This document shows, one piece after another, positions 1 to 62,259 of a DNA stretch of 64,000 nt (the stretch's first letter is position 1; the number at the start of each line of letters is the position of its first letter). The translations under genes were made by a program, and so were the position numbers. Source of the DNA: Phaeosaccion multiseriatum. Its lineage: Eukaryota; Protista; Ochrophyta, other classes. The notes beneath the pieces were generated by a model that did no database searches, was not told where the DNA came from, and saw nothing but the letters and a program-made list of their open reading frames with translations. The stretch spans positions 1,178,001-1,242,000 of the forward strand of contig OZ218950.1 of assembly GCA_965112735.1 (NCBI GenBank). Direction: 5' to 3'.

Positions 1-2075
1 AGTGAGCCCTTGCTCCGAGCCACGCGTTCTCCCCGACTTGGACAGCCTTGAAGACGAGCCCTCCCGTGCCTTCGATGGTGTGCGTGAAGATTGTGGAGTC
101 TTGCAACACCACCGCTTCGTCTCCAATGACGAGAAGATGCGCATCATCAGGCCTGAGCCATAAAGATGTGTCCTTGCCAACACTTGCCCCCAGCAGCCGC
201 AGCCACGCCGCGTACACCGGCCCGCCCGCGAAGTACTTGATGCAGAGAGCCTCTATGAAGGCAGGGCCCATGCTGCCGAAGCGACGTAAATCGAACGAAG
301 GCGAATCGAACGCTATGGGAGGCTGCCCCTCTTTGGCCTGCAAGGATGTGCCCAGAACTCGATGGAAATGAATGGCTGAGAGAGCGCCCGCCAAGGCCAT
401 GAGAACTTGAAAGACGAAGCTCCCCAACACAAGGAAGAACACTCCAGTATGGCTCTCGCTCAGAGTATCCTTCGCCACCACTTCCGGAAGGACAAAGGGA
501 CAGAAGGCGGCAGCCCCATGCACATGGCCATTGCGAAGCAGCAGGTCAGATGCCGACGCGCTGATCAGCACCCCCGGACACCATACGCCGAGGAGCAGCA
601 CCACAGTCGCAAGCCCACGCAGCGCATTGTGCACCCTCGACGGAACAGGAAGATTGCCTGCTGCATCGACGCCATCCTTCTCAGCATCAGCACTCGCTGG
701 GTTCGGCAATACAAACGGCCGAGGGGCGCCCACTACAGAAGAGTTGCGCGGCACGTCGTCGTCTCTACCCACAACGGTGCGATCGGCGACCGTGCTTCCG
801 TCCCCAATGCAAGCTCCGCCCAGGAGAAGAGCTTCGTTCGCAACAACGCTGAAGCGCCCGATGGTGATGCTTTGCGTATCCTCCTCTCCACGAGTTCCCC
901 CATCATCGAAAAGGTGCACACGGTTCGCGAGCTGGGAGTTTTCCCCTATCCTGAGCTTCTCCCATATCGTAGTGATAGGAAGTGTATGAAGTGTGCACCC
1001 CCGCTCCAGTCTGGCGCCCATGGCGGAAGCAAAAACACGGCTGAGCCCACAGTGTGCCACAAGAAGGAAGCCAACCTTGAAGAGAGGACTCTCCTGAAGA
1101 ACTCCGAGTGACAGCCGTGTGGTGGCGCTGGGGCCCAGTAGCAAGAAAATACGCTGTAGCGATAGCACTGCCACCATGTACAGCAGGCTTCCGATCATCA
1201 GCAGCACGGGGAACGCCAATGCACGAGCGAAGATGGGGACACTCTCCCCCGCGCCATCGTCATCACCCCCACCGGCAAGCACGAGTATCCAGAGGGGCAG
1301 CAGGTACGACCCCAAGTTGGTCACTGAAAGCAGGGCCAAAGCACAAAGCTCTTTTCCTATCCGCCGCAGCCCCTGCTCGCGTTCGACCTCTGCCAGCGGG
1401 CCAGAGAGTGACGAATGACCGAGCGACGCGTACGGACCGAGCTCCATCCCCTCGCCGATGATCACGTCCTTTGGCTCCTCATTCAGGCCCTCCCCCCCCT
1501 CCTGCGTCTGCCCCCCCTCCCATGGAGACGGACACACGTTGGACAGTATGCCCACCTTTGCCCCCTTCCCGATCCTCACGCGATGGACATGGAGCATGCC
1601 ATTCCGAGTAATGACAGACGGGCGAATGACGGCTCCGTACTCGATCACGGCCCCTTCTCCAATCTCGATCAAGTCATGCTCGTGCAGCAGCCAGCTCTCT
1701 AAGCGCGCGCTTCCACTGATTCGTGCCCCCAGCAGGCGGTTCCACACCCGCAAGGCGAAGGTACCACGGAGGGTAGAAATCAGCAGTGCGGCAAGTTTCA
1801 GCACATTCTGCACAGCATACCACCGCCAGTAGTACCAGCTCCTCACGGACCATCGCCCCGGTCGCATGCGGCCCAGCACAGTCCACTTCACCACTGCAAT
1901 CAGGGCAAGGAACCAGCTTGCTGACACGACGACGAGGAGTGGTAGCCAAGAAAGAATCCTCGTATTGCCGCGCCCTGCTCTGCGTAGCAAGTACACGCCA
2001 ACGAAGCTGGGAGAAAACCCGCAGCTGAGCACAGCAACAACGAGCAGCCAACTCAGAATCTGCAGCACCACTTGC
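1..2075 (-). CDS. Pls (epsilon-poly-L-lysine synthetase)-type NRPS terminal domain: 3 x [hydrophobic helix pair + left-handed beta-helix], truncated by window edge
   Basis: Hand translation of the open frame 2287->1 (762 codons, no stop): [15 protein letters not shown]..., [65 protein letters not shown]; second repeat AMGARLERG...[10 protein letters not shown]...ITIGRFSVV...CIGDGSTV; third repeat [13 protein letters not shown]...[10 protein letters not shown]...IFTHTIEG...[10 protein letters not shown]. Confidence 0.85.
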
Positions 2076-5000
2076 TTGTCAGTGCTGAGCCTCCGGTGCG
2101 CTTTCATCGCTTCCCCTCCTCCATCGACTGACTCGAAATCGCGCTCCTCGTCCGCCACTCGGGGGGCCTCGCTTGCTGCCGACGACTCCTCCCCGCTGTC
2201 TCCTCTGCCTCCGCCCTCCTCCGCGGCACCAAGCACTGAAAGTGCCACAGCGGTTCGGTTCTGGAAGATCTGCATTACTGTCAGAGCCTGCAGGAGTCAC
2301 ACAGACACAACAGGGTCAGTAACAAGAGCGGGACTCAACACGACGAAAGCTTTGGGCTCAAAGTTACTCACCTCGAAGCCGGGCACCTCTGCCCGGATAC
2401 GCGAAACCGCCTGAGCCGCACTCAACGATGTGCCTCCCTCTGCGAACAAGTCGTCATTGGCCTGCAAGCGAGGCTGCTCTGTGGCCTGCCTCAGGATGCC
2501 CAGCACTTGGCGGGCAGTGTCGCCTAACGCCTCGTCGCCGTCGGACGACTGTACAGCGGTTTTAATGTTTGCTTCCGCCTTAATCATTCTCAGCACCTCT
2601 TTCACGTCTCGCTTCCCGCTGCTCGTCATCGGCAGAGCATCCACGGCCACAGCCGTGCTCGGCACCATGTATGCCGGTAGCAGCTTGCCCACTCCTTGCA
2701 GCACCACCTCAACGTCGGCACTAGGAGGTGTCAGAGCCGCCACAACCGTCTCACGCTCTCTGTCCACGGCTGCCACAGCGCTCCTCACACCCTCTTGATG
2801 GAGCAGCGCAGCCTCCACCTCGCCCAGCTCAATGCGATAGCCGCGCACCTTCACTTGAGAGTCTCGGCGACCCCTAAACACCAGCGATCCGTCTGCCAGC
2901 TGCCGCACCAAGTCACCCTGGTAGAAGGTGTTAAGTTTGAGACGCGTCAGATCAGAACAGTGCCACAGGGCAGCAGAGAAAACCACCTCGACCCCCCCCC
3001 CCCCGTTGCATTCTCTGCTGTTCACTGCATGACATGCCAAAAGCAAGCCAAATGTACACACAACACACGCACACACACAAAGCCGCACACCCATGGGCAA
3101 CCTTTTCCACTTACCGTACGATACACTCTGCGCTGGTCCGCCAAGAAGGGCGCGGGGATGAAGGCCTTCGACGTGAGCTCTGGGCGCTTCAAGTACCCAC
3201 GGGCCAGCTGTCTCCCCCCAATGCACAGCTCGCCCTCCACGCCCTGAGGCACCAGCTGCAGACGCTTATCCACCACATACACTTGCACGCCGGCTCGAGG
3301 CTTGCCGATGACGAACCCATTCGACATGGCACCCGGACTGTACTCATGCGTCGTCACGGCATTCGTTTCGGTTGGGCCGTAGCTATTCACAAGGCGCACA
3401 TGGTGCCTCCACATGTCCACTTGGCCTTCCTTGATCGGCTCCCCAATCAATGCGATGGACCGTAGGGTGGCCTCCTTAGCTCCAGTGGTGATGTCTTGCG
3501 GTCGGAGCAGCGACAGCAGTGACGGGGTGCAGTACATGTCCGATACCCTCAAAGACCGTATCAGCTCCGGCAGGTCGTTCAGCATGGAGCCCTTCTCTGC
3601 CAAGCAAAGCGTCGCCCCACACGACAACGGCCCGAACAGCGACGCCACAGACACATCAAATGTCAAAGCAGCACTCAGGAGCACACGAGAAGATGCCGTT
3701 ATCGTCAGCTCCTCTTCGAAGAGAGTCGCCATGAAGCTGGCCGTGCTTCCATGCTCAATCATCACGCCCTTTGGCCGGCCGGTACTACCGGACGTGTGAA
3801 TCACGTACGCCATGTTCTCGCCCACCGCGTGGCACACAGGCTCCGCGGTACTCTCCACTTGCATCACAGCCACCACGTCCACACAGCTCACGTCTCCGAC
3901 ACGCCGCGCTAAGCTGGCATCGGCGGTTGCCAGCACCTCAGACTCGCCTGCTGCCTTTGCCGTCGTCAGAACGACGCTCAGCCCGGCGTCTTGTGCGATC
4001 ATCGACAGCCTATCGTCGGGATGCTCGGGATCCAGGGGCACGTACGCCGCCCCGGCCTTGAGCACGCCCAGCACTGCCACAACCGCCTCCACGCAGTCCC
4101 CAGCAATCAGCACCCCCACCAGGCACTCCGGCCCCACGCCCCTCCCCTGCAGCATGCATGCCACCGCATTCGCATGCCCATTCAGCTCCCCGTAGCTCAT
4201 CACCCGACCCGTCTCATACTCGTGCAGGGCCTCCTGCTCCGGACTGCGAGAGGCCATCTCTTCGAAAGCCGCGTGCAGGAGGGGCGGTGGTGGCGATGCT
4301 TCCTCTGCACCTCCCTCCGTGTCTCCATTGGCATCCCCCGCCACCAGTGCAGCGCCGCTCAACGTATCCACCACCTTCACACGGTCCTCGTGTGCCAAGA
4401 GATTCAGCTTCCACACGCTCTCGCCCGGCCTGCCCACTGCACTCTCCAGCAGCGCCAGGAAGCTCCGCCCCAGGGTCTCCACTGTGGCCTGGTCGAGCAC
4501 CGCCGTATTGTAGCACAGGCTGCCGTGCATATCCGACGCACTGTCCGTGCTGCGCACAAGGCATAGCTCGATGTCAGCCGTATTCTTCCAAGTATCCACA
4601 CCCGCCTCCTGCAGTACAAAGAAAGCCTGCAGCGCATTACCACGACCATCTCTGCCCAGCTGGGCCCGCTCCACCACCTTGTGGAACGGTGCCTCGGCAT
4701 GCTTCATGGCACCCAGATACGCGACCTGTACGCGAAGAAGCACCTCCCGAAAGCTGGGGCTTCCTCCCAGGCCCAGACGGAACGCGAGGGTGTTGACGAA
4801 GCATCCCATCACGCCCTCCAAGCCTTGCGCCACGTCTCTTCCGAAGTGCGCAGTGCCCACCACCACGTCCTCCGCTCCGCACACACGAGCCAGCAGCACT
4901 TGGAACGCGCCCATGAGCCCCACAAACAGCGTGGCGGAGCTATCCGCGCACAGTTTACTCAACTTGACCAGCATTCCATTGGGTAGGACCAAGTCCACCC

Positions 5001-8000
5001 TCCCGCTTCCTCCCACACGGATATCTTCACGCACCATTTCTCCACTGAGGCTCATTTGGTCATGTCGCTGACGGAGAGGCAGCTGCAGTGGACTGGTACC
5101 AGCCAGTTGACCCTGCCAGTATTCAAGCAGCTCCTCAATACGGCCTTCGCCGTCCAGCCGAGCTCGTTGCCACCTGGAGTAGTCCGCGAAGCTGAAGGGC
5201 AGAGCCGGTAGGTCTTGTGCGATTCCTCTCCCGGCCATGGCAGCCGCGCATGTGGCCTTGAACTCGCCCTGGAAGAGCAAGTAGGATGCACCATCAAAGA
5301 TGCAATGATGGAAAGTAGATACTGCGGCATACTGCTCCTCTAGTCCGCTCTGCTGCGGGAGGTGTACGACCAACGTACGCCATAGAGGCTGGCTCCGCTC
5401 CAAATCGAATGGCCGAGCGATATCGGCCTCGATCAGGCTCCGAGCGGCCCCAACACTGGTGGCCACGGCAGAGGAGAGACCAGCTGACACCACCGCGGCT
5501 GCCGTAGTTCCAAGCTGTACCTGCCTCAGAGAGCCCTGCTTTGTCCACTCAAGCGACGTCCGGAGCACATCATGTCGCTCCACTATGCTGCCTAACACTT
5601 GTGCTATCATGTCCACAATTTCAGCGGATGTTCGTCCGGAGATCAGCGAGATTGGCAGCGGCAGCACAAGTGGGAGATTGTACGCGCTCTGCCCGCCAGG
5701 GGAAGTCGTCCGCAGTGCTATGTCTGAAAAGTACATGTGTTCCTGCTGGTAAGCCGCGGGGGCGTCAGCATCCAAGGAGAAGTAGTGCGAAAGACCTGTT
5801 GCTTGATCATCAGGCTCACTCAGATGCCCCGAGTCCGCTCCCAGCACTTCCTCTTGGATCCATGCAGCCATTGCAGACACCGATGGATACGTAAACAAGG
5901 CGCCGCTCGACATGGTGACACCACACCAGGCCTCGACTCGCTTGCCAAACTCCACGGAACCCATCGAATCGAGCCCGGCTTCCATCAAGGGCATCGTTGC
6001 TGTAATGGTCACGTCATCGCCAACACACTCGACTGCCATACCCGTCAGGACATGCTCGATCCTCTCCCGCCGTGCTGACTCCGGCAAGTGCAGGAGCTCC
6101 TCCCGCACCTCGGCATTAACCTTTGCCGCCTCACCACTTTCTCCGCGGTCCGTCAACTGCCCGAGAAAATCGCTGTGCACAGGGGCCAAGCTCGCTCGGA
6201 ATCTGGACCACCTCATGGCCGGCATGACGGCCACCTCCTGCACGTTGGCTTGCGATTGACTTGCAAGGACGGCATCCAGAGTCTTCATACCTAGCGCCGA
6301 TGAGATCAGGCCCACTCCGGCCATCTCCGCAGCTTTGGACACCATTTCAAGCCGCACCGCCATACCCACGTCGCCCCATGGGCCCCACTGAATGTTGGAA
6401 GCAGGAAGGCCAAGCTGGCGTCGGCGGTACCGCATCAGCCCGTCCAAAGCAGCATTGGCCCCCGCGTAGGCGCTCTGATTGGACAAGCCAAGCAAAGCGG
6501 AGGTCGATGAGTACGAGGCGAAGAAGTCGATCTCCTCCCTGCCGCTCGCCGCCCACTCGAGGCACAGCGCGTGGAGATTCCAACCTCCCTGGATCTTGGC
6601 GGCAAAGACATTTCGCACGTTCTCTTCCGTCTCGCCCGACAACATTCCCTTTGCGCCAGTCACCCCCGCTGCGTGAATCACACCCCGAATGTGAGGCAGC
6701 CCCACCAAGGCCGTTGCTACAGCATCTCGAAGCTGGCCCATATCGGACACATCGCAGGCCACGGCCACAGCGGTGACACTCTCCATGCTCTGCAGGGCCT
6801 GCCACAGCTCTGAAGCTTCCTCTGTCGCCCGGCCGCTTCGAGAAAGGAGGAGCAGGTGTCGAGCACCCTGGGAGACCAAGTGATTCGCCGTCGCCAGACC
6901 CAGCCCCCCCAGACCACCGCTGATCAGGTAGGTCCCATCCTCCCTGCACGTGAAGCGATCGACTCCTGCCGGCGTCAGATGGAGTGTGCTGGGCACCAGC
7001 CTCGGAGCGAGGATCTCACACCCTCGAACCAGCAGGTCCACGCCTCGGCCGCCGTCGCGGGCTCCTGCAGCCAGCGTCACAGCCTGGGAGATAGCTTGGG
7101 CTTCCATCTTCTCTACTCTAGGTCGTGCATCCTCAAACTGTGGATACATGGCATACTCAAGGTCGATGTGGTTCACATCGAGGTCGCCCCGCTCCAGGCG
7201 TACGCTTCTCACCAGTCCCACTGCCCAGCTGTCCTGCCAACCAGCACCGCTGTACACTCCCGTTGTCACCACCGTGATCGGCATCACTGCCGCGTCCCCG
7301 TCTAAGCTCTGTACAGTTTGCACAAAGTGGATTGCCCCATCGGTAGCAGAGCCCGTTGCTGACGTCAAGTAGAAGAGATGGGCCCCACGTGGCTGCGCGT
7401 CCGAGCCGAGCGCCTCCACCATGTGCACCTCCACACCACTTGCTGTCGCCGCGCTTCGGACAGCTTCCAAGGCTCTGTGGTTGTTCGATGCGTGCTGCCC
7501 TTCGGCTGCCTCGGGAATCACGACGAGCCACGGAAGGCTGTCGGGCGCAGAAGCCTGCTGCGAAGCCGTGGGCACCTCCACCGCCTCCCACTCAACAACA
7601 TAGAGCGGGCCCTGCTCAGCTTCACTCTGCGGCTGAGGTGCTGCTGTGGCTCGCGCTGTGTACCAAGGAAAGGCTTTGCGCGTTGGGAACAGGATATGCT
7701 CCTTGCCCTTACTCTCTGGCTGCTGCACTGTGCTCAGAGCAAATCGAAACGAATCCTCAGAGTTCTGCCCTCGTGTGAGGGAGGAGATCCACGCCAGCCC
7801 CTCGCGACGCTCGCACATGGCTCCCATGCTGCTCAGCACAGGGTTGGGGCCCACCTCAACGATGCTCAGGTCAGCCCCCCTCCCGTCTCCCATCCAGTGC
7901 TGCACCAGCGTGTGGATGCCTTCTGCGAACAGCACTGGCGACAGCATGTGTTGCACCCAATACGTCGCCTGCGTCACCTCCTCCTCTCTTACCACCTCAC

Positions 8001-47000: not shown

Positions 47001-50000
47001 AGTGCGGTATACTCCAGCCCCTACATCCTTGCCCTGGTAGCCCCAGTCGCCGAGGCTCATCATGCCGATGAAGACGCCTGCCCGACTGCCCGCCAAGCTT
47101 GCTTTGTCGCACCCCGCGTTGACCAATGCCTCGTATCCAACCTCCAGCATCACTCGCTGGTGCGGATCCATCGCAGCCGCTTCGGCAAACGAGATGCCGA
47201 ATACGGCGGGGTCAAACATTTCCACCTCAGCAATGAAGCTGCCTTGCCAATCCTCGCTCCCCTCTTTTCCCGCCCACCGGTTCAGAGGGGCAGTCTGAAT
47301 GCAGTCAGTACCTGCGCGCAGCATTGACCAGAAGGCCTCTGGACTGTTCGAGCCCCCCGGAAAGCGGCACGCCATGCCCACAATAGCCAGGGGGGCAGTC
47401 ATGCTACCTCCAGCCGGTTCAGCATTCCTCTCCTCATATTCACCCTCCTCAGCCCCCAAGACCAAGCCCTCGAGCCACTCAGCCAGCGCTGCCACTGAGG
47501 GGTGACTGAAGAGCACGTCGTTGGGGACCGGCACGCCGAAGCGAGCTTGGAGTCGACTCCGAAGCTCCACCGTAGACATAGAGTCCAGCCCAGCCTCCAT
47601 CAAAGGCCTCAAAGCGTCGAGCTCGATGTCTGCTTCCCCAATGCATGCTTTCGCCATCTCCATGATTAAAGCCTGCAGCATGGGCTTTCGCTCTTCCTCC
47701 GACAGCTCCAGTAGGTCGCGCTTAACCTCGGTAGTCACACTGTTGCTAGCCTTGTTCTGCGGTCCCACCATCGAAGCCTCTCTAACGAGAGCATCAAGCA
47801 TCCCCGGGTTGCCAGCCGCCTGAGAAAAGGCGGGCCAGTCCATGCCAGGCAGGACCAAGAGCTCGCGCGATACCGCAGATGGGGCTGACACGCCGGCATC
47901 AAGCGCCGCCATACCTAATGCCTTACTGATGAGCCCAACGCCGGCCATCTCCAGACTGGCCATGGCAACTTCGGACCGAGCGGCCATGCCAGCTTCGCCC
48001 CACGGCCCCCACTGCAGGGCCACAGAGCTGGAGTGACCGAGACGCCGACGATGCTGCATCAGCCCGTCCACAGCAGCGTTGGCTGCAGCATAGTTGGCCT
48101 GGCCTGCATTGCCTAGCACACCTGCCATGGATGTGTAGGACACAAAGAAGTCCAAGGGCCAGGCCATCTGCAGCGACAGCTCGTGCAGATTCCAAGCGCC
48201 CTCCACCTTCGGCTTGAAGACCTCTTCGATACTCTCGGGCGTCTGGTCCACCAGCAAGCGATCGTCGAGCACGCCGGCAGCGTGGATGACACCTCGCACG
48301 GGCGGCATGCTGCTGAGCGCCGTGCCTAGGGCCTTCTCAAGCGACTGCGCGCTAGACACGTCGCACGATACTGCCTTGGTGCTCACCCCGCCGGGCACGT
48401 TGAGAAGCTCCTCCCACAGCGACTGGGAGTCCGCTTTGACCTTTCCCCCTCGCGAGAGCAGTACAAGATGACGAGCTCCTTTATCAGCCAAATGCTTCGC
48501 AGTCGCCAGCCCCAGTGCCCCCAGCCCACCGCTGATAACGTAAGTCCCATCTCGCACGACGGGAATGCCACACTCAGGGCTACTGAGCACAACCTTCCCT
48601 ATATGCTTCGCAGTTCTGAGGAAGTTCATTGCCTCCGCAAGCTCATCCCTCAAGTCGAACGCCTTCACTGGTAGCGCCTCGGCCCTGCCCGCCTCACTGT
48701 CCGCTGTCAGCTGCTCCAGCCTAGCGAACGCCCAGCCCTGCTTCTCGGCCTTGAAGTCGTCTGCTATCATGGAGTCCAGCGCAATCAGCTCGTACAGCAC
48801 GTCGGGCCTGGCAGCCTTCATCGCCTCCCCGGTCCACACGCCTCGCTTGCCGATCTCCATGAAGCGCCCGTTCTTCGTCAGCAGCTCCAGAGAGTAAGGG
48901 ATGAAGTTGTCGGACAGGCAATTGAGCACCACATCCACCTTTGCAGCTCCCATGGAAGCCTTGAAGGCCTCCGCATCTCTCGACGACGCAACGTGCTTCA
49001 CGCCCAGGCCTCGTAAGTAGGCGTGCTTCTCCTCGGATCCAGCAGTGGCGTAGATCTCCGCTCCGATGCGCTGAGCAATCTGCACGGCCACCAGACCCAC
49101 TCCATCTGACGCGGCATGGATGAGCACCTTCTCACCACGCTTCAAGCCAGCGAGTTGCTCAAAGGCGTGCACCACTGTGAGCCACGCGATAGGCAACGCT
49201 GCCATGTCATCAAAGGTCCTGTTGGAAGGCATGATGGCCAGACACACGTCACGTGTCGTTACGTGGGAGCAGAAGCAGCCCTTGTCCGGAAACCCGTAGA
49301 CCTTGTCTCCCACTTGAAAGCGCGAGTTTCGCGATGCTCGAGTGACCACCCCCGATAGCTCGATGCCAGGCTGCCCAGGGTCGCCAGGGTACAGGTCGAG
49401 CACATTCAGCACGTCTCTGAAGTTGAGCCCCACCGCCTTGACACAAATTTCAATCTCCCCGTCCTGCAAGGCAGCGTGTCTCTCGGAAGGGAGTACGTCT
49501 CTGCGCTTCAAGCCTCCCTCGATGCTTCCCCTCGCCATGAGATCGAAGGAGAAGGGAAGACTGACTACCGAGGAGCGAGTCAACTGAGGTGTGAGATATC
49601 GTCCGTCTCGCACCCAAACGTCCTGCCCCAGTGATGCAATGGCCCAGCACTTGGGCAGGTCCTCGCTGCCCACGTCCACCACTGTCATGGCCAGCGAAGG
49701 GTGCTCGACACGAGCGGTTCGAATCATGCCGTACACCCAGTGATGCCTCCACCCCTCGCCGCCACTCAGCGTGTCCTGCACCAGCACCATCAAGGGAGCT
49801 GGCCTTCGTAAGAGCTGCTGTAGCAACGAGAGGAGCGTCTGTGCCTCTTGGCTGGGGCTCTGCTGCTTGCCGCCGAACAAGGTGCACACCACACGGCCCC
49901 ATCCTGCTGGCGCTTCTGACGCGAGGGTGGAGTCGTCGATGATCTTGACCTCCCTCTCCGTCAGTGTCACAGATATGGGCAAGCTCTCTTTCGCTGCCTT

Positions 50001-53000
50001 GTCCAAGCTACCACGAGCGCCGCTGGTGAGGAGCAGCCAAGCTTCCTCTCGCTCTTCCACGTCACCTCTGCTGCGGGAGATGGAATCGTTGGGCAGCCAC
50101 TCTAGAGAATACAGCGCTCGGCTGACAGGGTTGGTGCGGGAGAAGCCTCGGGCGAGCTGCATCCGGAAGCGGTTAAGCTGCACGAGCACTTGCTTCGTCT
50201 TGAAGTGTGCTATCACGATGTCGCACTCGATCGCAAGAGCTTGAGAGTCCACCTCCTTCACCACCGCATGAACCCACACCTTCTCGCTCGTGATGGCCCC
50301 TCGCACAAGCACCTCTTCGCAGCCGGTGGGCAAGAAGACGGCGGCAAAGGCCTTGCTCGTCAGCTCCTCCGGCAAGAGCGCCAACATCGTGTGCGCGGCA
50401 TTATCCAACACTGCAGGGTGAAGGTAGAAGCCGTTGATCTCCCACTCCGCCGATAGGCTGCCATCCATTGCCGCCGCAACCGACAAGGCCTGTCCACTGG
50501 CTGCGAAAAGGTGCTGCGTTCGGACAAAGCTGGCACCGTAGTCATAACCAGCACCGGCAAGCTTGAGGTAGAGCCCCTCGGCGATGTCCTCGTCCCCCAC
50601 CGCGGCTCTCACCCGCGCCACGTCCAATGTCTCTGCCTCCGTCCTTGTGCACAATTGAAGGGAAGTCGCCTTCGCCACCGTCTCTCCAGCCTTGCCGTGG
50701 GGACCTCCGATAAACTGCACGCTGCCGCGGGCAGTGACGAAGGCACTGACTTCAGAAGCGACCACAGTGGTGGAGCCCTCCACCGTACGGTCCACATCGG
50801 GGGCACGAGCGCCTGCAATTTCCAGTGGAGCCATGAAGACCAGGCCCTTCAGGACCACTTGCCTCTCACCAGGGAAAGGCTTGCCCTTCAGCAAGGCGGC
50901 AAGGCCAATCTCGATGTACCCCATGCCCGGCATGAGCACCACTCCTCCCACCGCGTGATCCTGCAGCAAGCCCTTGAGCTGAGGGGTGAAGCGGCATGAG
51001 AGGAGTGTTCCTCCCTTCTTCTCGACGACGCCGCCGCTTGGTACCATCGCATGCGCCTACTGCTCGAACCAAGGGAGCGCACGACGGGTGGGGAACAGAG
51101 GTGTGGGCTTGCCCAGTACTGCCGCCACTGCTCTGTCGAACGAGGCGGTGTCGCTCCCCTCCCGCCGCATGGACGGCTGCCACATCACGTCCGACCTCTC
51201 TCCCTCGCATTGCCGCGCCATGTTGATCAGCACAGAGCTGGGCCCAATCTCTACCACTCGTACACCCTCAGGCCTCTCCCGGAGCAGCGTGGTGATACTC
51301 TCCACGAACAGCACCGGCGATAGCATGTGTTGCACCCAGTACGCTACCTGCGTCACCTCCTCAGCCTTCACCACCTCGCCTGTCACGTTGGACACCAGGG
51401 GGATGCGTGGGGCGCTGAATGACACCTGCCTCAGAACCTCCTCCAGCGCACGTACAGCGGGCTCCATCAGAGGAGAGTGGAAGGCGTGCGATACCTCCAA
51501 GGCCTTGCAGCCCACCCCATCGGCTGTGAGTCTCTCCACCACCTTGTCCACAGCGCTGCGAGCACCAGAGATCACGCAGGCCTGAGGGCCGTTGGAGGAC
51601 GCCAGCACAACCTCGCCTGCCACCCCCGCAGCGTCGATCCTTGCCATTGCTGCTTCCCTGCCCGTTTTCACTGCGATCATCACTCCATCCCCCTCGGGGC
51701 AGGCCTGCATGGCGGCTCCTCTCTTGGCGGACAGCATCAGCCCGTCCTCCAGCGACATGACGCCGGCCACGCACGCCGCCACTACCTCGCCCAGGCTGTG
51801 GCCCATCACCATCGACGGCTCCACTCCCTCCGACTTCCACAGCGCGCAAAGGGCGTATTCCAGCACAAACAGGCACGGCTGGCAGTAGCGTGTCTCCTTC
51901 AGCAGCGCTTGTGCAGTCTCCCCCTCCTCCTCCTCCCCGTCCTCATCGACCGCCGGGTACATGAGCTCCACCACAGACTTGTCCAGCCAGGCCCGCTCCA
52001 TGAGCAGCCTGCTGCACCGCTGCACGCACTCGCGAAAGACCGCACGCTGTTAAGGCACCAAAAGAGAGACAGAGAGCGGAGGGAACAAGAGAGAGAGACG
52101 AATATGAGAACGAGGGCAGGTGGGCCGAGGTGATGGAGCACAACAGAGGCAATGCCAAGAGAGGACTGAGACGGAGATGGTGCGCGCAACGAATCAACTA
52201 ACCTCGTCGTAGAGCTCCTTGCCCATTCCGGGGTACTGCGAGCCTTGCCCCGTGAAGACAAAGGCGTGCGCAGGTGAGGCGACCTCCGTATCCTCACTCC
52301 CCTTCGGCGCTTTCGAGACCCCTCCCTCCACTCTCGGCGCAGCGCTGCTCAGCACCACATGGGCGTTGGTGCCTCCTGCTCCGAACGAGCTTACTCCTGC
52401 GTACAGCACCTCCTCGCTGTCATTGGCGTGTCCCTCCTCGCTACCCAATGGAGATAGTCTCGACGAAGGGAATGCCACCGCAAATCCATCAACACCAATC
52501 TCAGGATTGAGCTTGCCGAGGTGCAGATTGCGTGGAACAGCTCGGTGCTGAAGCGCGAGGATGGTCTTGATGAGTCCCGCGATGCCTGCGGCGCCCTCCA
52601 AGTGACCAATGTTGGTCTTGACCGCTCCCACCATGAGTGGGAAAGAGCTCTCCCGCCCTTCTCCGTACGCGGCTTTGAGAGCGCTCATCTCGATGGGGTC
52701 GCCAAGAGCCGTGCCCGTGCCGTGCGCCTCCACGAAGTGAACCTCGCTGCCCGCTACACCCGCCTCCTCCAAGGCTGCCTGCATCAGCGTCTGCTGTGCG
52801 TCTGGACTGGGTGCTGTGAGCCGCATAGAGCGCCCATTGTGGTTCACGGAGCTTCCCCGCACGACGGCCAGGATGTTGTCTCCGCTGCGCTTCGCGTCGT
52901 CAAGCCGCTTCACCACCAAGGCGCCGCAGCCCTCTCCTCGGACGTAGCCGTCAGCCGCTGCGTCGAACGTCTTGCAGCGCCTTCGGTAGCAGCACGAGGC

Positions 53001-56000
53001 AGATGGGGGCAGAGAAGGAAGGACAAGCCGATGAGAGGGATGATGCTTGTGTTTACCTGTCAGCAAGCCCTCTATGACTCTACTCGAGCTACAGGAGCTC
53101 GATGCTCCCCAAGGCCAGCCCCCCCATTGTCCGTTCTCCGTACGTACCAGTCCTTGGACAAGAAACCTCCCTTGTCGAACTGCTCGAAGGAACGGGAGCT
53201 GAGTAGCAGGTTCACTCCTCCCACAACCGCAGCTTCGCACATGCCGAAGCGAAGGTAGCGACAAGCCGTGTCCAAGGCAACGAGCGAGGAAGAGCAAAGC
53301 GTATCAACAGATATGCTTGGGCCTCGCAAGCCCAGTGCGTAGGACAGGCGATTTGCAGGGCAGCCTGCTGACTCGCCCATCATGGAGTGAGCTTTGGTGT
53401 CACCATCCTTGTTCAGCGCGGCCCAGTCGCCGTGCTGCATGGAGCCCACGAACACTCCGGTGTTGCTATTGCGCAGCGTGTCCATGGAGAAGCCTGCCTC
53501 GTGCAGCGCCTCGTAGCCGACCTCGAGCATGATGCGCTGAGTGGGGTCCATGGCCTCCGCCTCGGCTACGGAGATGCCAAACGTGGCGTTGTCGAACATC
53601 TCCACGCCGTCGATGAAGCCTCCGTGCCACTCCTTCGCCGCACCAGTGAGTCTTCCCGAGGGCATGGCGGCGATGCAGTCCCTTCCCTCCAGCAGCATGG
53701 ACCAGAAAGCGTCAGGGCTGTCTGCGCCTCCAGGGAAGCGGCACGCCATGCTCACTATTGCCAGCGGGGCAGAAGCGTCGCCCCCCCCTTGAGACGATGG
53801 CATCCTCCTGGGCAGGCGCAGGCTGCTCGCACTTCCCTCCATGAGCGCTGAGCCCAACCACTCCGCCAAGGCCGCCACGGTGGGGTGGGCGAAGAGGGCG
53901 GCACTACTAACGGGAATGTCCGTGAGCAGGTGCAGACGCTGCCTCAGCTCCATGAGCGCCAACGAATCCATGCCAGCCTCCATGAGAGGTTTGTCCATGT
54001 CGATGCCGACAGAGCCTGCCGTGCTGGAGAGGGCGATATCGGAGATGACGGATCGAAGCCTCTCTTGGCGTTCAGCTGGACTGACACCGCGGAGCTCTAC
54101 TGCCAAGGAGTTTTTTCCGGCCGCCGATGTCGGTGGGGCGGGCAGCAGCTTGAAGGCCTTTCTGCTCGTGAACGGGGAGGCTCTCACGTTGGTCTTCTCC
54201 GCGTGTGAGATGGCCGTCCCCTCCAGGATGACGTGGGCATTGACACCGCCAAACCCAAAGGAGTTGACAGCTGCAAAAGGAGCAGAAGTAACCACAGCGA
54301 GCAGAAGGGCATGGTGAGAACAGATTCAGCCATTATCCATCACACGATAGCTCATACCCTCTAAAGTCCTCCTTAACTTGTCTCAAGAAGACGCGAGTGA
54401 GTGAGTGGGAGTGGGTGAGTAAGTGATGAGTGAGTGAGTGAGTGAGTGAGTGAGTGAGTGAGTGAGTGAGTGAGTGGGTGAGTGAGTGAGTGAGTGAGTG
54501 AGTGAGTGAGTGAGTGAGTGAGTGAGTGAGTGAGTGAGTGAGTGAGTGAGTGAGTGAGTGAGTGAGTGGTGAGTGAGTGAGTGAGTGAGTGAGTGAGTGA
54601 GTGAGTGTTACGAGATAAGGCATCCCAGTATGCCTTCAGTATTATCCAAATAGAGTGAGTGAGTGAGTGAGTGAGTGAGTGAGTGAGTGAGTGAGTGAGT
54701 GAGTGAGTGAGTGAGTGAGTGAGTGAGTGAGTGAGTGGTGAGTGAGTGAGTGAGTGAGTGAGTGAGTGAGTGAGTGTTACGAGATAAGGCATCCCAGTAT
54801 GCCTTCAGTATTATCCAAATAGAGTGAGTGAGTGAGTGAGTGAGTGAGTGAGTGAGTGAGTGAGTGAGTGAGTGAGTGAGTGAGTGAGTGAGTGAGTGAG
54901 TGGTGAGTGAGTGAGTGAGTGAGTGAGTGAGTGTTACGAGATAAGGCATCCCAGTATGCCTTCAGTATTATCCAAATAGAGTGAGTGAGTGAGTGAGTGA
55001 GTGAGTGAGAGAGTGAGTGAGTGAGTGAGTGAGTGCGGGAGTGAGTGAGTGAGTGAGTGAGTGAGTGAGTGAGTGAGTGAGTGAGTGAGTGAGTGAGTGA
55101 GTGAGTGAGTGAGTGAGTGAGTGGCTGAATGACTGAGTGAGTGGTCGCAGGAAACGTTTTTTAATAAGGGCCCCAACGCACCTCCGATTCGGGTGGAGAT
55201 GGGGGTCATGCGTCCGGGGATGGGCAGCAGAGCGCTGTTGCCCTCCGTCTTCAGTGCAGGGTTCAGCGTGGACAGGTTGAGATTGGGAGGCGCTTGGACA
55301 TGCCTGAGCACCAGCACCGTCTTGATGAGCCCTGCAATGCCTGCCGCAGCCTCCGCGTGACCAAGGTTGGTCTTGATCGCTCCAACGACGATACGGCGGG
55401 CTGTTGCCAGGTCGTGGTCTCCGTAGGTTCCGGCGATGGAAGCCCACTCCGTGCGGTCCCCGAGGGGCGTGCCCGTGCCGTGCGCCTCGATGAAGCTCAC
55501 GTCGGACAGAGCGATGCCCGCCTCTGCTACGGAGTCCAAGACCGCGGCCTTCTGTGCCGCTTCGTTGGGAGCGGTGAGGGTCGTGCCGTGGCCCGTGTGA
55601 TTGATGCAGGAGCCTCGAATCACCGCCAATATGTTGTCTTGGGCCTCTATGGCGTCTTCGTGGCGCTTTAGCACGACAGCGCCGCAGCCCTCTGCTCGCA
55701 GCCGCAGGGCACACGCAGCAAATGGAGGTGACTGGAGGGTGAGCTAGGTGGTGGTCGAGCCGTGCTCATCAGGTTTATAGAACAAGGATAATCTCAGACC
55801 CAGCCAAAGAAACACTCTCCGCTCATCCTGCACTTCTCTCCTTCCCTTTCCTCCCCCCTTCCTCTCCCTTTCCCTTTCTCCTTATCTGTGCCCCTGCCCC
55901 TCTCCATATCTCCGTCCCGCCCTCTCCCTCTCTGTCCCGCTACCTCTCTCGCTCTCCCGATCTTTCTCTCCATCTCCCCTTCTCTCCCTCCCTGTCTCAT

Positions 56001-57894
56001 TTCCTCTCCCTCTCCATCTCCCGCTCCTGCTCCCTCTTCCCCTCTGTCCCTCTCCCCGCCTCTCCCTCTCCCTCTCTCCGCCCTCCTTGCGGAGCTGGAA
56101 AGGGCCATCATCATAATCAGAAGCGCTGCGGTAAGCTCCTCCACATGTCAATCTCATTCTCGTCCATCTAGTCTTCTTTACAGTCTCGCAGGCGCCGCTC
56201 GTGCTCACCTGCCCGCACGTAGCCGTTGGCAGCGGCATCAAAGACCATGCACTTGTCTGACAGCAAGTGCAGCGATGACATGGCGGAGAAGGGCTCGGGG
56301 TTGGTCATGATGGACACTCCTCCCGCCAGGGCCATGTCGCAGTCGCGGCTTTGGAGGCCTCGGCAGGCCTGGTGCACGGCCACGAGAGAGGAGGAAGAGG
56401 CCGTGTTGATGGTCTGCGAAGGTCCAGTCAGACCGAGGGCGAAGGAGACCCGATTGGCCACGAGAGCCTCTGAAGCGCCCGTAGCAACGTACGGTCCAGG
56501 AGCGTGAGACTGCATTTTGGACATCCAGTCTCCGTTGCCGCACCCGATGAACACTCCTGGACGTTCGAGAACAGGACTTTGTGGTGAGGTATGGCTGTGG
56601 TGAGGTCAGTGACCATCAGAGCATCAGAGCAGTTTCTCCCTCTTCGCCTGATTCTGCTCGCTATTTGCTTCAGTCATCACTACTGAAAGGGGTACATTGA
56701 CCCACCTGTTTTGCTCTCAAGAAGAGCTTCCTTGTCAAGCCCTGCGTCGCGAAAGGTCTCGTAGGCCACCTCCAACATGACTGCGTGTGTTAAGGAGAAC
56801 AGCAAAGCAGGTGAGACCCCTTGTTGGTTATACTGAAGACGAAACAAGTCCGAGCGAGTCACCATTGTGACGCTTTGCGTACCTCGCTGCTGAGGGTCCA
56901 TTGCGGACGCCTCCCGGTCAGAGATGTTGAAGAAGGCGTTATCGAACAGCTCTACGTCGGGGAGGAAGCCCCCCCGCGTGGGGTAGCCGCTGTCCAAGGC
57001 CGCAGGCTCCCATCTGTGAGAGAGAAGTGCGCGAAAGCGGGAGGAGTGTTTTGGGAGGCGCCAGCCAGGCAGCAAGGGCAGTGAAGCAGGGAGGGGGCGC
57101 GGTGAAAGGAGAGAAAGATAAGTGTGAGAGCCATGAGCTCTCCTCGACCGTGTGTACAGTGATTCTTCAGCCCTCATCCCGTCCACTACCATCCCAACCA
57201 CTCCAGCAAGATCTGCTGCGGTGGCAGGAGGGGCGCGGGGCGGGCGGGGGCAAAATGCTAAGCAAGAAGCGCCGTGATGCACGCTGCCCATCATCTCCAA
57301 GGTTCCGTCGCCCAGACCCAACCACCGCCCACTCACGCACCTATCTGTGGGCATGTCTGTGATGCCGCTGCCCTCCCTGCAGAGCAGGTCCCACAGCTCA
57401 GGAACGGAGTTGGCACCTCCAGGGAAGCGGCAGGCCATTCCAACAATGGCAATGTCGCCACGACGATGGCCGCCTTTCTGGCTTCTCGTTGGTCCGCTGC
57501 CCATGTTTGGGTGCGTGGGGGAGAGAGGCGCCCTTCCAACCTCCTCCTCTTTGCCCTTGCCATCGTACCAAAAGTCAAAGGGCTTCTTGTCGCCGAGGTC
57601 AGCAACAACCTCCAATTGAGCCCTCCTCCTCGTTTGAGAGGCCGAGACTCCTTCGTCGATTCCGCCTCGTTGTTCCTCCTTTTCGTCGCCTGCCGGAGAG
57701 TCTCGCTCCCACAAGACTTGCGTCACCCCCCCCATTGGAACGTTACGACGGCCTTCCTCGCCCCTGGAACCTTCATTTCCCTTAGGCCTACCCGAGAGGA
57801 GGAAGGGCTTCTTCTGGTCATCCCCTCTGCCTGCTGTCTCGCCGGACGTCACTCCTCCCAGGGCATCGTCCCCTCCTCGTCCACCATGATCCAT
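1..57894 (-). CDS. Giant multi-exon modular type I PKS-NRPS hybrid megasynthase (>=17,630 aa, 3' end outside window): loading module, 9 PKS modules, 2 NRPS modules and a Pls-type membrane C-terminal domain
   Basis: Consecutive minus-strand ORFs join in frame via GT-AG introns, restoring conserved motifs (GFLSxD[G/W]|RCKTFD, YRT|GDL, GDAIELG|ALK, RA|EGCG). Exons high->low: 57894-57341, 57013-56883, 56780-56706, 56556-56209, 55691-55182, 54270-53148, 52980-52203, 52046-46768, 46647-41604, 41426-36381, 36203-30132, 29971-25688, 25532-20418, 20257-13942, 13742-13188, 13083-12801, 12655-12169, 12031-11736, 11246-9788, 9421-3115, 2917-2372, 2287-1. The start codon is inferred (first ATG after an in-frame TGA). 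Contains one in-frame TAG and one 2-bp frameshift. Confidence 0.88.
2230..5767 (-). CDS. NRPS module 2: C-A-PCP
   Basis: HHCIFDG; full A-domain core motifs; [11 protein letters not shown], completed across intron 2371-2288 (GFE|[12 protein letters not shown]). Confidence 0.93.
2595..8776. repeat. Direct repeat copy B (AT-KR-ACP-C-A), partner 13420-19606, offset about 10,830 bp
   Basis: Identical peptides at offset 10830 (4214/15044, 5052/15882, 7646/18476); the A-domain intron is also duplicated. Confidence 0.95.
5840..10425 (-). CDS. PKS module 9: KS-AT(malonyl)-KR(non-LDD)-ACP
   Basis: DTACSSS, HGTGT, GHLEG; AT-KR-ACP nearly identical to module 7. Confidence 0.92.
9596..9765. repeat. (CCCT)n microsatellite in intron 9422-9787
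   Basis: Direct inspection. Confidence 0.95.
10495..12942 (-). CDS. PKS module 8: divergent minimal KS-ACP (no AT, no reductive domains)
   Basis: [30 protein letters not shown]; [13 protein letters not shown]; 3 introns. Confidence 0.88.
11264..11600. repeat. (CGTG)n followed by degenerate (GGGA)n microsatellite in intron 11247-11735
   Basis: Direct inspection. Confidence 0.93.
13030..16597 (-). CDS. NRPS module 1: C-A-PCP
   Basis: C domain HHCIFDG; A domain [43 protein letters not shown]|[19 protein letters not shown]; [11 protein letters not shown]. Confidence 0.93.
13420..19606. repeat. Direct repeat copy A (AT-KR-ACP-C-A), partner 2595-8776
   Basis: Near-identical nucleotide sequence to 2595-8776. 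Confidence 0.95.
16670..21040 (-). CDS. PKS module 7: KS-AT(malonyl)-KR(non-LDD)-ACP
   Basis: DTACSSS, GHSLG, HAFHS; [12 protein letters not shown] with catalytic YAGAN; ACP GLDS. Confidence 0.92.
21110..26316 (-). CDS. PKS module 6: AT-less KS-DH-ER-KR(B)-ACP
   Basis: QTACSSS; ORF 20414..25837: no AT motifs; [26 protein letters not shown]. Confidence 0.92.
26390..30754 (-). CDS. PKS module 5: KS-AT(malonyl)-KR(B-type)-ACP
   Basis: ORF 25684..29979: AT followed directly by the KR structural subdomain; [13 protein letters not shown]; no DH or ER motifs. Confidence 0.92.
30820..37012 (-). CDS. PKS module 4: KS-AT(malonyl)-DH-ER-KR(B)-ACP
   Basis: ORF 30128..36166: [42 protein letters not shown]. 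Confidence 0.92.
35575..46663. repeat. Near-perfect tandem duplication, period 5,223 bp (about 2.1 units), including an intron
   Basis: ORF-track entries recur at +5223 (36166/41389) and +5221 (46610, after the 2-bp deletion); introns 36204-36380 and 41427-41603 read identically. Confidence 0.95.
37077..42235 (-). CDS. PKS module 3: AT-less KS-DH-ER-KR(B)-ACP (tandem copy of module 2)
   Basis: Same motifs as module 2; intact frame (ORF 36272..41389). Confidence 0.9.
42300..47397 (-). CDS. PKS module 2: AT-less KS-DH-ER-KR(B)-ACP
   Basis: DTACSSS; KS runs via a short linker into DH with no GQGSQ/GHSLG; [10 protein letters not shown]; KR VLDD; frameshift at 45808-45813. Confidence 0.9.
47460..53775 (-). 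CDS. PKS module 1: KS-AT(malonyl)-DH-ER(variant)-KR(B-type)-ACP
   Basis: DTLCSSS, HGTGT, GHLEG; AT GQGSQ, GHSLG, HAFHS; [12 protein letters not shown] and HPAVLD; [10 protein letters not shown]; KR GGLGALG, VLDD, YAAAN; ACP GLDS. In-frame TAG between AT and DH. Confidence 0.9.
53850..57459 (-). CDS. Loading module: KS with active-site Cys->Ser (KS-S) plus ACP, no AT
   Basis: [15 protein letters not shown] start; active-site motif reads [10 protein letters not shown] (TCT at 56398-56396); EAHGTGT and [10 protein letters not shown] histidines intact; [13 protein letters not shown]. Split by 5 introns. Confidence 0.9.
54394..55143. repeat. (GAGT)n microsatellite array interrupted by three identical 45-bp units, within intron 54271-55181
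   Basis: Unit ttacgagataaggcatcccagtatgccttcagtattatccaaata at 54608-54652, 54777-54821 and 54934-54978. Confidence 0.95.
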
Positions 57895-60953: not shown

Positions 60954-62259
60954 ATGCAGCGAGGAGTCAGTATCGAGGTAGGAGAGGGAAAAAAGGGAAG
61001 GAAAGGAAGACACCTCCGAGGGGGGTGAGCGGACTCTATCTTTCCCTCTCCTCTCCTCTCAACCTCTTTTACCTCCTTCCCCCCTTTTTCTCTCTGCACT
61101 ACCATCTTTCCCCGCTTGCCTTTGCCTCACAGGCTAATCGCCTGTATGAAGCCATTATCGGGGGGGACAGCGTCCAAAGGGTGCGAGCGGCCGCGAGGGC
61201 CCTCGTCGCCAAAAACGGAGGGAGGAAGGCATGCTTGGATGGGCCCCTCGATAACGAGCTGCGTCCTGCCCTGTACACAGCTGTATATGTGGGGAATGGG
61301 GACATAATTGCTCTTTTGCTGCAAGAGGGGGCGTCGCCGAATGTTGCAAGGCCTTCAAATGGCTGCACTGCACTGCTGCTCGCAGCTGAGCATGGGGATC
61401 CTGCTGCGGCACAGCAGCTGCTTTCAGCGGGTGCTAATCCCAACCACGTGGATGACAGAAATGTTTCCGGCTTCACCCCCTTGTTGATGGCCGCACAGCA
61501 TGGGCACGACAGCGTGACGCAGCTGCTGCTCAACTCCGGGGCAGATGCGGATATGGTACACCGCGGCGGATGTTCTCCGCTTGCTATTGCGAGCCAGGAA
61601 GGGCATGGTATTGTGGTGGAGCAACTCATCAGAGCTGGTGCTGACGTCAACAAACGTAACCATGAAAAGAGGAGAACGGTGTTGATGCCAGCGTGCACCT
61701 ACGGCCACCGAAGTATTGTACGAAAACTGCTCAGGGCTGGTGCCGAGGTGAATGCACTGAGTGGCGACGGGTTCGGAGCGATACACTTGGCGTCTACAAA
61801 TGGCCATGCTCGTGTCGTGGAGGAACTCGTCTCAGGAGGGGCCGATGTGGAGATGCCCAACAGTGAGGGCCTCACAGCTCTGTACATGGCTACTTATCTT
61901 GGCCACAGGGCAGTGATCCGTGAACTCTTGTCTGCGGGGGCTGATCCGGACAGGGGGGCAATGTCAATGGGATGATGTCCTTGTTTGTTGCGGCAATGAA
62001 GGGTCACACTGGGGCGGTGATGGAGCTTCTCTCAGGAGGGGCCTCCCTGGCAAAGGCTCTGACTCAGGCACGAGGGAGTCACGCTGTAACCTCAATCGAG
62101 CGCCTTCTGGCCGCGGACAGACAGCACTTTGCGTCACAAAGCGCTTTGGACCTGATGCGAGGCACTGACCCTCTCTTTCGCAAGGAAGGGAGGCTGAAGG
62201 TGTCCCAGAGAGAGCTTAGCCCTGAGGTGCTGCAGGAGGTGGCGGAGGAGATGGCATGA
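60954..62259 (+). CDS. Ankyrin-repeat protein (about 8 repeats); exon 60954-60977, intron 60978-61132, exon 61133-62259 with a frameshift at the G6 run 61953-61958
   Basis: Repeats GCTALLLAAEHG, GFTPLLMAAQHGH, GCSPLAIASQEGH, GLTALYMATYLGH with LLxxGAD/N; GAG|GTAGGA donor and pyrimidine-rich CAG acceptor; one extra G joins ORF 61025..61975 to ORF 61972..62259. Confidence 0.88.

Follow-up and report, generated by a model that had tools for sequence, protein, structure and literature searches.

A giant spliced gene of the ochrophyte Phaeosaccion multiseriatum that probably encodes a hybrid modular polyketide synthase and nonribosomal peptide synthetase

Giant modular polyketide synthases (PKSs) encoded by single spliced genes have already been described from microalgae. 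The PKZILLAs of Prymnesium parvum, with masses of 4.7 and 3.2 MDa, are trans-acyltransferase (trans-AT) enzymes that contain many non-elongating ketosynthases (KS0) and a thioesterase (TE) end, and their genes are supported by RNA-seq and proteomics (10.1101/2024.01.29.577497). The same paper cites PKS1 of Chlamydomonas reinhardtii (Heimerl et al. 2018), a green-alga type I PKS of unknown product, encoded by a gene of ∼80 kbp, with a zygospore-wall phenotype in the knock-out. A hybrid of PKS and nonribosomal peptide synthetase (NRPS) modules is known from the haptophyte Chrysochromulina tobin, where it lies on a contig longer than 50 kb, its blocks being separated by a stop and a frameshift (PMC4580454). 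Here we describe a 64,000-nucleotide (nt) stretch of the genome of the ochrophyte Phaeosaccion multiseriatum (assembly GCA_965112735.1, contig OZ218950.1, positions 1,178,001 to 1,242,000 of the forward strand), referred to below as the window, in which all coordinates are counted. On its minus strand, from position 57894 to position 1 and past the window edge, one nuclear gene probably encodes a hybrid modular PKS-NRPS of ∼50 domains with a colinear mechanism.

The gene resembles those of PKZILLA-1, PKZILLA-2 and PKZILLA-3 in being a giant, intron-split single gene for a modular microalgal PKS, with GT-AG introns, highly similar internal repeats and a product that can be read by colinearity. 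It differs from them in its size (1.9 MDa), in its mostly fully reducing modules, and in the presence of five integrated AT domains, two NRPS modules and an end of the type found in the epsilon-poly-L-lysine synthetase Pls; in addition, it is known here from sequence alone. With the Chrysochromulina tobin hybrid it shares NRPS modules that are embedded in an algal type I PKS extending beyond 50 kb. The Chrysochromulina tobin system, however, includes methyltransferase (MT), crotonase and aminotransferase domains, no Pls-type end is reported for it, and its splicing was not resolved. Like Chlamydomonas reinhardtii PKS1, the gene is a single giant algal type I PKS gene with an unknown product, whereas the account of PKS1 in the citing paper reports neither NRPS modules nor a Pls-type end. 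Bacterial cis-AT PKSs and NRPSs are alike in domain families and motifs, but the sequence identities are only 30–40%, and spliceosomal introns are present in the algal gene. Among the matches listed from the protein database, the C-A region retrieved only bacterial multi-module NRPSs (31–37% identity), and the best matches of exon 12 were cis-AT PKSs from cyanobacteria, myxobacteria and actinobacteria; the sole eukaryotic match listed for this exon was a partial protein of Chrysoparadoxa australica (39%).

The gene model was rebuilt independently from stop-to-stop frames, Pfam matches and paralog-guided scoring of splice sites, and was checked by eye. Between ∼57.9 kb and base 1 the minus strand is packed with open frames that reach lengths of 2,160 codons, with gaps of at most 911 nt between the coding blocks. 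Pfam domains follow each other in these frames in the order KS, acyl carrier protein (ACP), AT, dehydratase (DH), enoylreductase (ER), ketoreductase (KR), condensation (C) and AMP-binding, and chance is excluded because the KS, AT, KR, C and adenylation (A) domains are matched with E-values of ∼1e-40 to 1e-75. Nearly all boundaries between the open frames cut through a domain. The Pfam matches to the N-terminal part of the KS break off at about position 222 of the 252-position profile, and what is left of the KS starts the following frame. The DNA at the frame boundaries reads GTAAGT or GTGAGT directly after the upstream exon and CAG directly before the downstream one. Boundaries that cut domains and carry splice signals identify a spliced eukaryotic gene, which is neither a bacterial operon nor a series of independent genes.

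The resulting model comprises 22 minus-strand exons, from an ATG at 57894 to window base 1 (Table 1). Its coding total of 52,895 bases, or ∼17,630 codons, corresponds to 1.87 MDa inside the window, given as the sum of the separate exon translations; the searches were likewise run exon by exon. The 21 introns, with lengths of 84–911 nt and a median of 160, are all of the GT..AG type, and the phases fit at 21 of the 21 junctions, given a 2-nt frame jump at 45813/45814. Two frame breaks in the assembled sequence, considered below, were crossed by frame jump or X only, and no sequence letters were added. An earlier note on this DNA had described a eukaryotic, intron-split PKS-NRPS of ∼1.9 MDa, with 22 exons of ∼52.9 kb in sum and consistent phases from ATG 57894 after a 2-bp correction, and the rebuilt model reproduces all of this. 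The phases and the introns that split domains speak for its claim of a single megasynthase, whereas the TAG (codon 1503) and the 2-nt gap that break the frame as assembled speak against it.

The positions of the introns are strongly periodic. In nine of the ten KS domains an intron is found at the same codon, both A domains are split between Y-R-T and G-D-L, and both thiolation (T) domains between P-G-F-E and A-L, so that 13 introns in total recur with the modules. Since KS, A and T domains are all split in this way, the big open frames cannot be separate genes; the periodicity is the pattern expected from module duplication after intron gain. From the phases and the domain-splitting introns we infer that the PKS and NRPS parts are carried by one transcript and one polypeptide. 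An in-frame stop (57915–57913) is located upstream of the ATG, and none of the ten open reading frames (ORFs) between 58 and 64 kb gives a PKS-related Pfam match of the kind expected for FAAL or AT loader exons. At base 1 the frame is still open, and the 3′ end of the gene therefore lies beyond the window.

Table 1. Exons of the PKS-NRPS gene and the two breaks in its assembled frame (window coordinates)
Feature	Positions	Strand	Content and evidence
Exon 1	57341..57894	-	ATG, ∼145 residues without family match, then start of KS0; NCBIfam PKS matches from residue 139–148; donor GTGCGT
Exon 2	56883..57013	-	KS0; tblastn with paralogous KS; splice sites CAG and GTACGC
Exon 3	56706..56780	-	KS0; taking out the in-frame 102-nt upstream intron recovers a KS motif; donor CAG/GTGGGT
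Exon 4	56209..56556	-	KS0, active-site motif TASSSS, Ser for Cys at ∼56404
Exon 5	55182..55691	-	KS0 C-terminal half, HGTGT and GH histidines present; PF02801 E 2.6e-36
Exon 6	53148..54270	-	KS0 end, ACP0 (GMDSL), KS1 N-terminal part (TLCSSS); Pfam PP-binding, ketoacyl-synt
Exon 7	52203..52980	-	KS1 C-terminal part, linker, AT1 start; Pfam
Exon 8	46768..52046	-	AT1, DH1, ER1 (HAASDGVG), KR1, ACP1, KS2 N-terminal part; holds in-frame TAG; Pfam and motifs
In-frame TAG (codon 1503)	51057..51059	-	AT1-DH1 linker, exon 8
Exon 9	41604..46647	-	KS2 C-terminal part, DH2, ER2, KR2, ACP2, KS3 N-terminal part; without AT (post-AT linker only); holds 2-nt frame jump; Pfam
Short G run	45807..45820	-	Frameshift inside DH2 motif; 2 nt shorter than twin copy at 40591–40592
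Exon 10	36381..41426	-	KS3 C-terminal part, DH3, ER3, KR3, ACP3, KS4 N-terminal part; without AT; duplicate of exon 9
Exon 11	30132..36203	-	KS4 C-terminal part, AT4, DH4, ER4, KR4, ACP4, KS5 N-terminal part
Exon 12	25688..29971	-	KS5 C-terminal part, AT5, KR5 (LDD type), ACP5, KS6 N-terminal part
Exon 13	20418..25532	-	KS6 C-terminal part, DH6, ER6, KR6, ACP6, KS7 N-terminal part; without AT
Exon 14	13942..20257	-	KS7 C-terminal part, AT7, KR7 (no LDD), ACP7, C1 (HHCIFDG), A1 to Y-R-T motif; TIGR01733 315 bits
Exon 15	13188..13742	-	A1 end (SSGKRD Lys), T1 (GGTSL)
Exon 16	12801..13083	-	T1 last helix, linker, KS9 start
Exon 17	12169..12655	-	KS9 N-terminal part (AACSSA, Cys present)
Exon 18	11736..12031	-	KS9 middle (HATGT)
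Exon 19	9788..11246	-	KS9 end (TLGH), ACP9, KS10 N-terminal part; without AT or reducing domains
Exon 20	3115..9421	-	KS10 C-terminal part, AT10, KR10, ACP10, C2, A2; ∼6 kb near-identical to exon 14
Exon 21	2372..2917	-	A2 end, T2 (GGTSL)
Exon 22	1..2287	-	T2 last helix, Pls/PosA-type terminal domain, six hydrophobic helices; open at window edge

The encoded polypeptide starts with KS0-ACP0, followed by module 1 (KS-AT-DH-ER-KR-ACP), modules 2 and 3, which are identical twins (KS-DH-ER-KR-ACP), module 4 (KS-AT-DH-ER-KR-ACP), module 5 (KS-AT-KR-ACP), module 6 (KS-DH-ER-KR-ACP) and module 7 (KS-AT-KR-ACP). A C-A-T unit separates this part from module 9 (KS-ACP) and module 10 (KS-AT-KR-ACP), after which come a second C-A-T unit and the terminal domain. 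The Cys/His/His triad is complete in nine of the ten KS domains, including KS9. KS0 contains Ser instead of the active-site Cys, within the sequence TASSSS, and has kept both His residues; it is accompanied by an ACP and lacks an AT. By the definition of KSQ-type loading modules KS0 is not one of them, as it has Ser instead of Gln and no AT of its own. It may work like a decarboxylating loader, and a Ser-type KS0 fits a decarboxylative acetyl start without proving it; an acetyl start had been proposed in the earlier note.

The DH domains of modules 1, 3, 4 and 6 have kept intact His and Asp motifs. In ER1 the NADPH-binding glycine motif reads HAASDGVG, compared to HAASGGVG in the four other ER domains. 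All eight KR domains contain the Tyr residue; KR1 to KR6 have the LDD motif, whereas KR7 and KR10 lack it but have kept the Rossmann motif. The ten ACPs, one per module, show the motif G-x-D-S-L/M. The reducing order predicted in the earlier note (four fully reducing modules, then KR-only, fully reducing and KR-only modules) was found in the rebuilt model, and so were the malonyl-specific HAFH-type ATs: all five AT domains, which are near-identical, contain GHSLG, HAFH and the Arg residue, and are malonyl-specific by the established rule.

A tblastn search with the AT sequence detects exactly five ATs, and out of the nine elongating modules numbers 2, 3, 6 and 9 are devoid of an AT, as is the loader. 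In modules 2, 3 and 6 the same search leaves only the post-AT linker, which indicates a clean loss of the AT from a cis-AT ancestor. In its AT content the polypeptide agrees with neither the cis-AT nor the trans-AT type. Cis-AT PKSs have an AT in each elongating module, and here five ATs are present for nine modules; PKZILLA-like trans-AT PKSs have no integrated ATs throughout, and here five are integrated. The ACPs of the AT-less modules have the motif PLMEAGLDS in common with those of the AT-bearing modules. Colinear extension in modules 2, 3, 6 and 9, and loading, would need an AT that works in trans, and the assembly line proposed below assumes one.

The NRPS part comprises two C domains (PF00668, E ∼1e-48), both with the motif HHCIFDG and both directly following a PKS ACP. 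The A domain reaches 315 bits against TIGR01733 (cut-off 317), with only part of this intron-split domain being scored, and the motifs FDVS, NSYGPTE and SSGKRD are present, with the equivalents of Asp235 and Lys517, as is GGTSL in the T domain. The two C-A-T units flank KS-ACP and KS-AT-KR-ACP, in line with the two amino acids around ketide modules that the earlier note had predicted. The AT-KR-ACP-C-A blocks of exons 14 and 20 are near-identical over ∼6 kb. Within them, the AT-KR-ACP-C blocks at 15788–18788 and 4958–7958 include 3.2 kb without any difference, while the adjoining upstream KS parts differ by 30–65% per 250 nt; identity with such sharp borders suggests that gene conversion or a duplication took place recently.

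The two A domains are ∼97% identical. Just after GPTE, in the loop that contributes to the substrate pocket, 20 differences are clustered in 250 nt (14038–14288 versus 3211–3458), including a length difference of 3 nt, which suggests selection for an altered substrate. The pocket codes, read by hand from motif anchors and checked against an alignment with LgrA, would be DVAYAASVFK for A1 and DVAYAISAVK for A2; they differ at 3 of 10 positions, and the loop in A2 is one residue shorter. To our knowledge neither code corresponds to a described pocket code. The nearest A domain of known structure is that of LgrA module 2, a Gly-activating module; most pocket positions differ from it, and no substrate was assigned.

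The C-terminal part of the polypeptide inside the window, encoded by exon 22, matches the Pls/PosA family (TIGR02353) with an E-value of 2.7e-37 and 128.5 bits, compared to a curated cut-off of 423.1 bits, for a domain that is cut by the window edge; the best stretch spans profile positions 2–302 of 695. Hydropathy analysis predicts six helices, in pairs at residues 73–133, 314–375 and 559–633, around soluble domains, and a Hexapep and acetyltransferase-like stretch is found at residues 445–524. The epsilon-poly-L-lysine synthetase Pls/PosA shows the arrangement predicted here, in which three membrane-helix pairs surround soluble domains that resemble acyltransferases and an A-T unit immediately precedes them. 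In Pls, however, a lone A-T unit and the terminal domain make up an enzyme that produces a homopolymer, whereas here the domain stands at the end of a 50-domain PKS-NRPS. No paper on a PKS-NRPS with a Pls-type end was found in the literature searched, and none that contains TIGR02353; a search on epsilon-poly-lysine, algae and PKSs turned up bacterial genome papers only. With an end of this type, release probably occurs by transfer to an acceptor and not by hydrolysis, and the final product is not readable from the sequence, which in this respect does not support the readable product announced in the earlier note.

The domain order suggests the following assembly line. The Ser-type KS0 would decarboxylate malonyl-ACP0, giving an acetyl starter. 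Seven malonate extensions, by the fully reducing modules 1–4, the KR-only module 5, the fully reducing module 6 and the KR-only module 7, would then lead to a 3,7-dihydroxy-C16 acyl-ACP, which C1-A1-T1 would link as an amide to amino acid 1. KS9-ACP9 and KS10-AT-KR-ACP10 may add two ketide units, and C2-A2-T2 may join a second, different amino acid, after which the membrane-embedded Pls/PosA-type end would unload the chain at the membrane, with an amine as the probable acceptor. Malonyl units for the loader and for the four AT-less modules would come in trans from the five near-identical malonyl ATs of neighbouring modules, or from a discrete AT.

Because KS9 has a complete Cys/His/His triad and appears competent, a mere passing of the chain through module 9 is less likely than the addition of two ketide units, which argues against the statine-like product that the earlier note had left as an option. 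Its colinear reading, a 3,7-dihydroxy-C16 chain with two amino acids, is also obtained from the domain order as redetermined here, with the reservations that four modules lack an AT and that the chain length hangs on the number of tandem copies. Modules 2 and 3 are identical tandem copies of 5.2 kb, and the C16 length thus depends on a correctly assembled copy number. The colinear product would further require that ATs act in trans and that no other starter is delivered. In a more far-reaching version of this model, which we advance tentatively and would not expect to hold in full, one membrane-anchored polypeptide of at least ∼1.9 MDa has a few homogenised ATs that serve AT-less neighbours, and, at a membrane, the Pls-type end attaches the finished chain of hydroxy-fatty-acyl, amino-acid and ketide parts to an amine acceptor or links several units to one another.

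In the alignment with modules 3 and 4, the TAG that interrupts the assembled frame falls on a linker residue that varies. The idea that it belongs to an intron was rejected, because on both sides its flanks align to continuous coding sequence of modules 3, 4 and 6, and because an intron between the closest GT..AG pairs would be much too short. A genetic code in which TAG specifies Gln was also rejected, since this TAG is the single in-frame stop (TAA, TAG or TGA) in 52.9 kb of exons. The 200 residues past the TAG gave no match among public proteins at E 1e-20. The second break is associated with the tandem units 46663–41400 and 41442–36177 (5.2 kb), which differ only in one substitution (46409 versus 41188) and in the length of a G run, where the first unit has 2 nt fewer. 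This 2-nt gap falls in the G run coding for Gly-Gly of the DH2 catalytic motif, and the frame is shifted after ∼codon 3210. The TAG and the gap have two possible origins, namely errors made in assembly or polishing, or lesions that this one haplotype carries. G runs of 13–15 nt, with a length that differs between the copies, are also present in the homologous A-domain introns (13820–13835 and 2990–3005), and are likely to be a further site for consensus errors or slippage.

For comparison with public data four contig sets (X1, X2, X4 and X5) were available, none of which is on record as RNA. The public runs contain 0.62–0.66 of the 31-mers of the window, equivalent to a divergence of ∼1.3%, and therefore represent another haplotype or strain. 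Between 45700 and 51700 they deviate from the window by the same ∼1.3%, mostly at synonymous sites, and the deepest run has both versions; the organism is probably a heterozygote, unless there is a second copy that is nearly identical. The 40 differences listed in exon 8 comprise 28 synonymous and 12 non-synonymous ones (expected synonymous fraction 0.25, P ∼2e-9), and the part of this exon without close paralogs has 8 versus 2 among the differences listed. This synonymous excess indicates that the coding sequence 3′ of the TAG was under purifying selection until recently.

At the TAG itself no difference appears among those listed for the four contig sets, which have 94 further differences outside the list, and the contig sets are weak support for the TAG. 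At 45807, the X2, X4 and X5 contigs, from two studies, have only the G run that is longer by 2 nt, and X1 has both forms; because the twin copy is otherwise identical, contigs at this site are not assignable to either copy. The Asp codon of ER1 (GAT, 49104–49106) is GGT, coding for Gly, in every public contig that covers the site, where paralogs confound the comparison. It may be a private change of this haplotype, or the contigs may derive from paralogous modules. The deviating glycine motif agrees with the possibility, raised in the earlier note, that ER1 is dead; the contigs, subject to the paralogs, do not support it. A loose contig end at 46663 corresponds to the intron in front of the later module copies; it shows that the repeat junction exists, and says nothing on the number of copies.

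A number of points weigh against an intact gene with a colinear product. The assembled frame stops at the TAG, which the differences listed in the four contig sets do not contradict, and shifts again at the 2-nt gap, whose short form may be real, as X1 has both the short and the long run. The case for one transcript is built on introns, and the public runs are all contig sets. The reading assumes AT sharing, an acetyl starter and colinearity, the assembler could have miscounted the tandem identical modules, and neither A domain could be given a substrate. Protist PKSs, moreover, often depart from colinearity. Alternatively, the assembled copy may be a recently inactivated allele or pseudogene, in which the TAG, the 2-nt loss in DH2 and the Gly-to-Asp change in ER1 are real in this haplotype, so that no full-length enzyme is made from it and another haplotype or strain is perhaps intact. 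Three potentially damaging changes do lie within 5.3 kb (51059 to 45813), the TAG is absent from the listed differences, most of the X1 depth at 45807 is without the 2-nt-longer form, the contigs at 49105 all have Gly and not Asp, and the divergence of the public runs (31-mer share 0.66) marks them as another haplotype or strain. Against this, the 43 kb downstream contain no further stop or shift and have their catalytic motifs all intact, the 28:12 synonymous excess points to constraint until recently, and the gap is located in a homopolymer between 99.96%-identical repeats, a classic site for consensus errors. Inactivation of this copy is thus unlikely, although it deserves to be kept in mind.

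If the TAG is real it could also mark the end of a first polypeptide (KS0-ACP-KS1-AT), with the next one starting at an ATG downstream, to give two or three cooperating polypeptides similar to the split modules of bacterial trans-AT systems. An in-frame ATG is indeed found three codons past the TAG. However, the locus has neither a spacer between genes nor a promoter-like gap or a polyA region, the break falls in a conserved AT-DH linker that is unbroken in modules 3, 4 and 6, and eukaryotic mRNAs are usually monocistronic, which together make such a division very improbable. A more serious contender is that the gene is intact and expressed and its product non-colinear, either because AT-less modules are skipped, because a neighbouring module is used twice, because a separate enzyme primes ACP0 with a longer fatty acyl group, or because the Pls-type end polymerises the chain or transfers it to a lipid or polyamine. 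Such behaviour is compatible with the lack of an AT in four of nine elongating modules and in the loader, with the Ser of KS0, which differs from the canonical Gln of decarboxylating loaders, and with the fact that the Pls family makes polymers. The AT-less modules, on the other hand, have KS domains that all retain Cys/His/His and ACPs with the PLMEAGLDS motif, which fits ordinary extension. We regard a non-colinear product as a distinct possibility that we do not favour, and consider a single gene for a hybrid PKS-NRPS with a colinear mechanism the probable interpretation of the locus.

Some further features of the region may be recorded. The introns at 9594–9755, 11298–11600 and 54395–55143 are full of 4-nt microsatellites of the GGGA, CCCT and CACT types (coding strand), the GGGA and CCCT arrays in neighbouring introns being mutual reverse complements; the intron at 54395–55143 contains, in addition, three copies of a unit of ∼130 nt. 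Opposite four of the five AT domains, antisense ORFs of 260–290 codons are found on the plus strand (7646–8509, 18476–19339, 28196–29053 and 34464–35315), most likely as a by-product of GC-rich codon usage. Within 6 kb upstream of the megasynthase, a plus-strand ORF (61025–61972) with at least five ankyrin repeats (Pfam Ank, E 4e-45) is the only gene that can be recognised.

Giant single-gene assembly lines of microalgae have become readable only recently, with the PKZILLAs, and almost none of them has a known product. The two frame breaks described here also illustrate why, in long-read assemblies, megasynthase genes with many repeats should be checked against the reads before they are called intact or dead. 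A mostly saturated, unbranched chain with two amino acids would be an unusually simple reading for such a gene, and as such provides a concrete target for mass spectrometry. Three features can be tested together in this system, namely ATs that are shared within one polypeptide, a Ser-type loader KS and a membrane off-loading domain of the poly-lysine-synthetase type. If the more far-reaching version of the model were correct, the gene would be responsible for an undescribed class of algal lipopeptide-like compounds of the membrane or cell surface, released by a mechanism that has not yet been studied in any PKS-NRPS.

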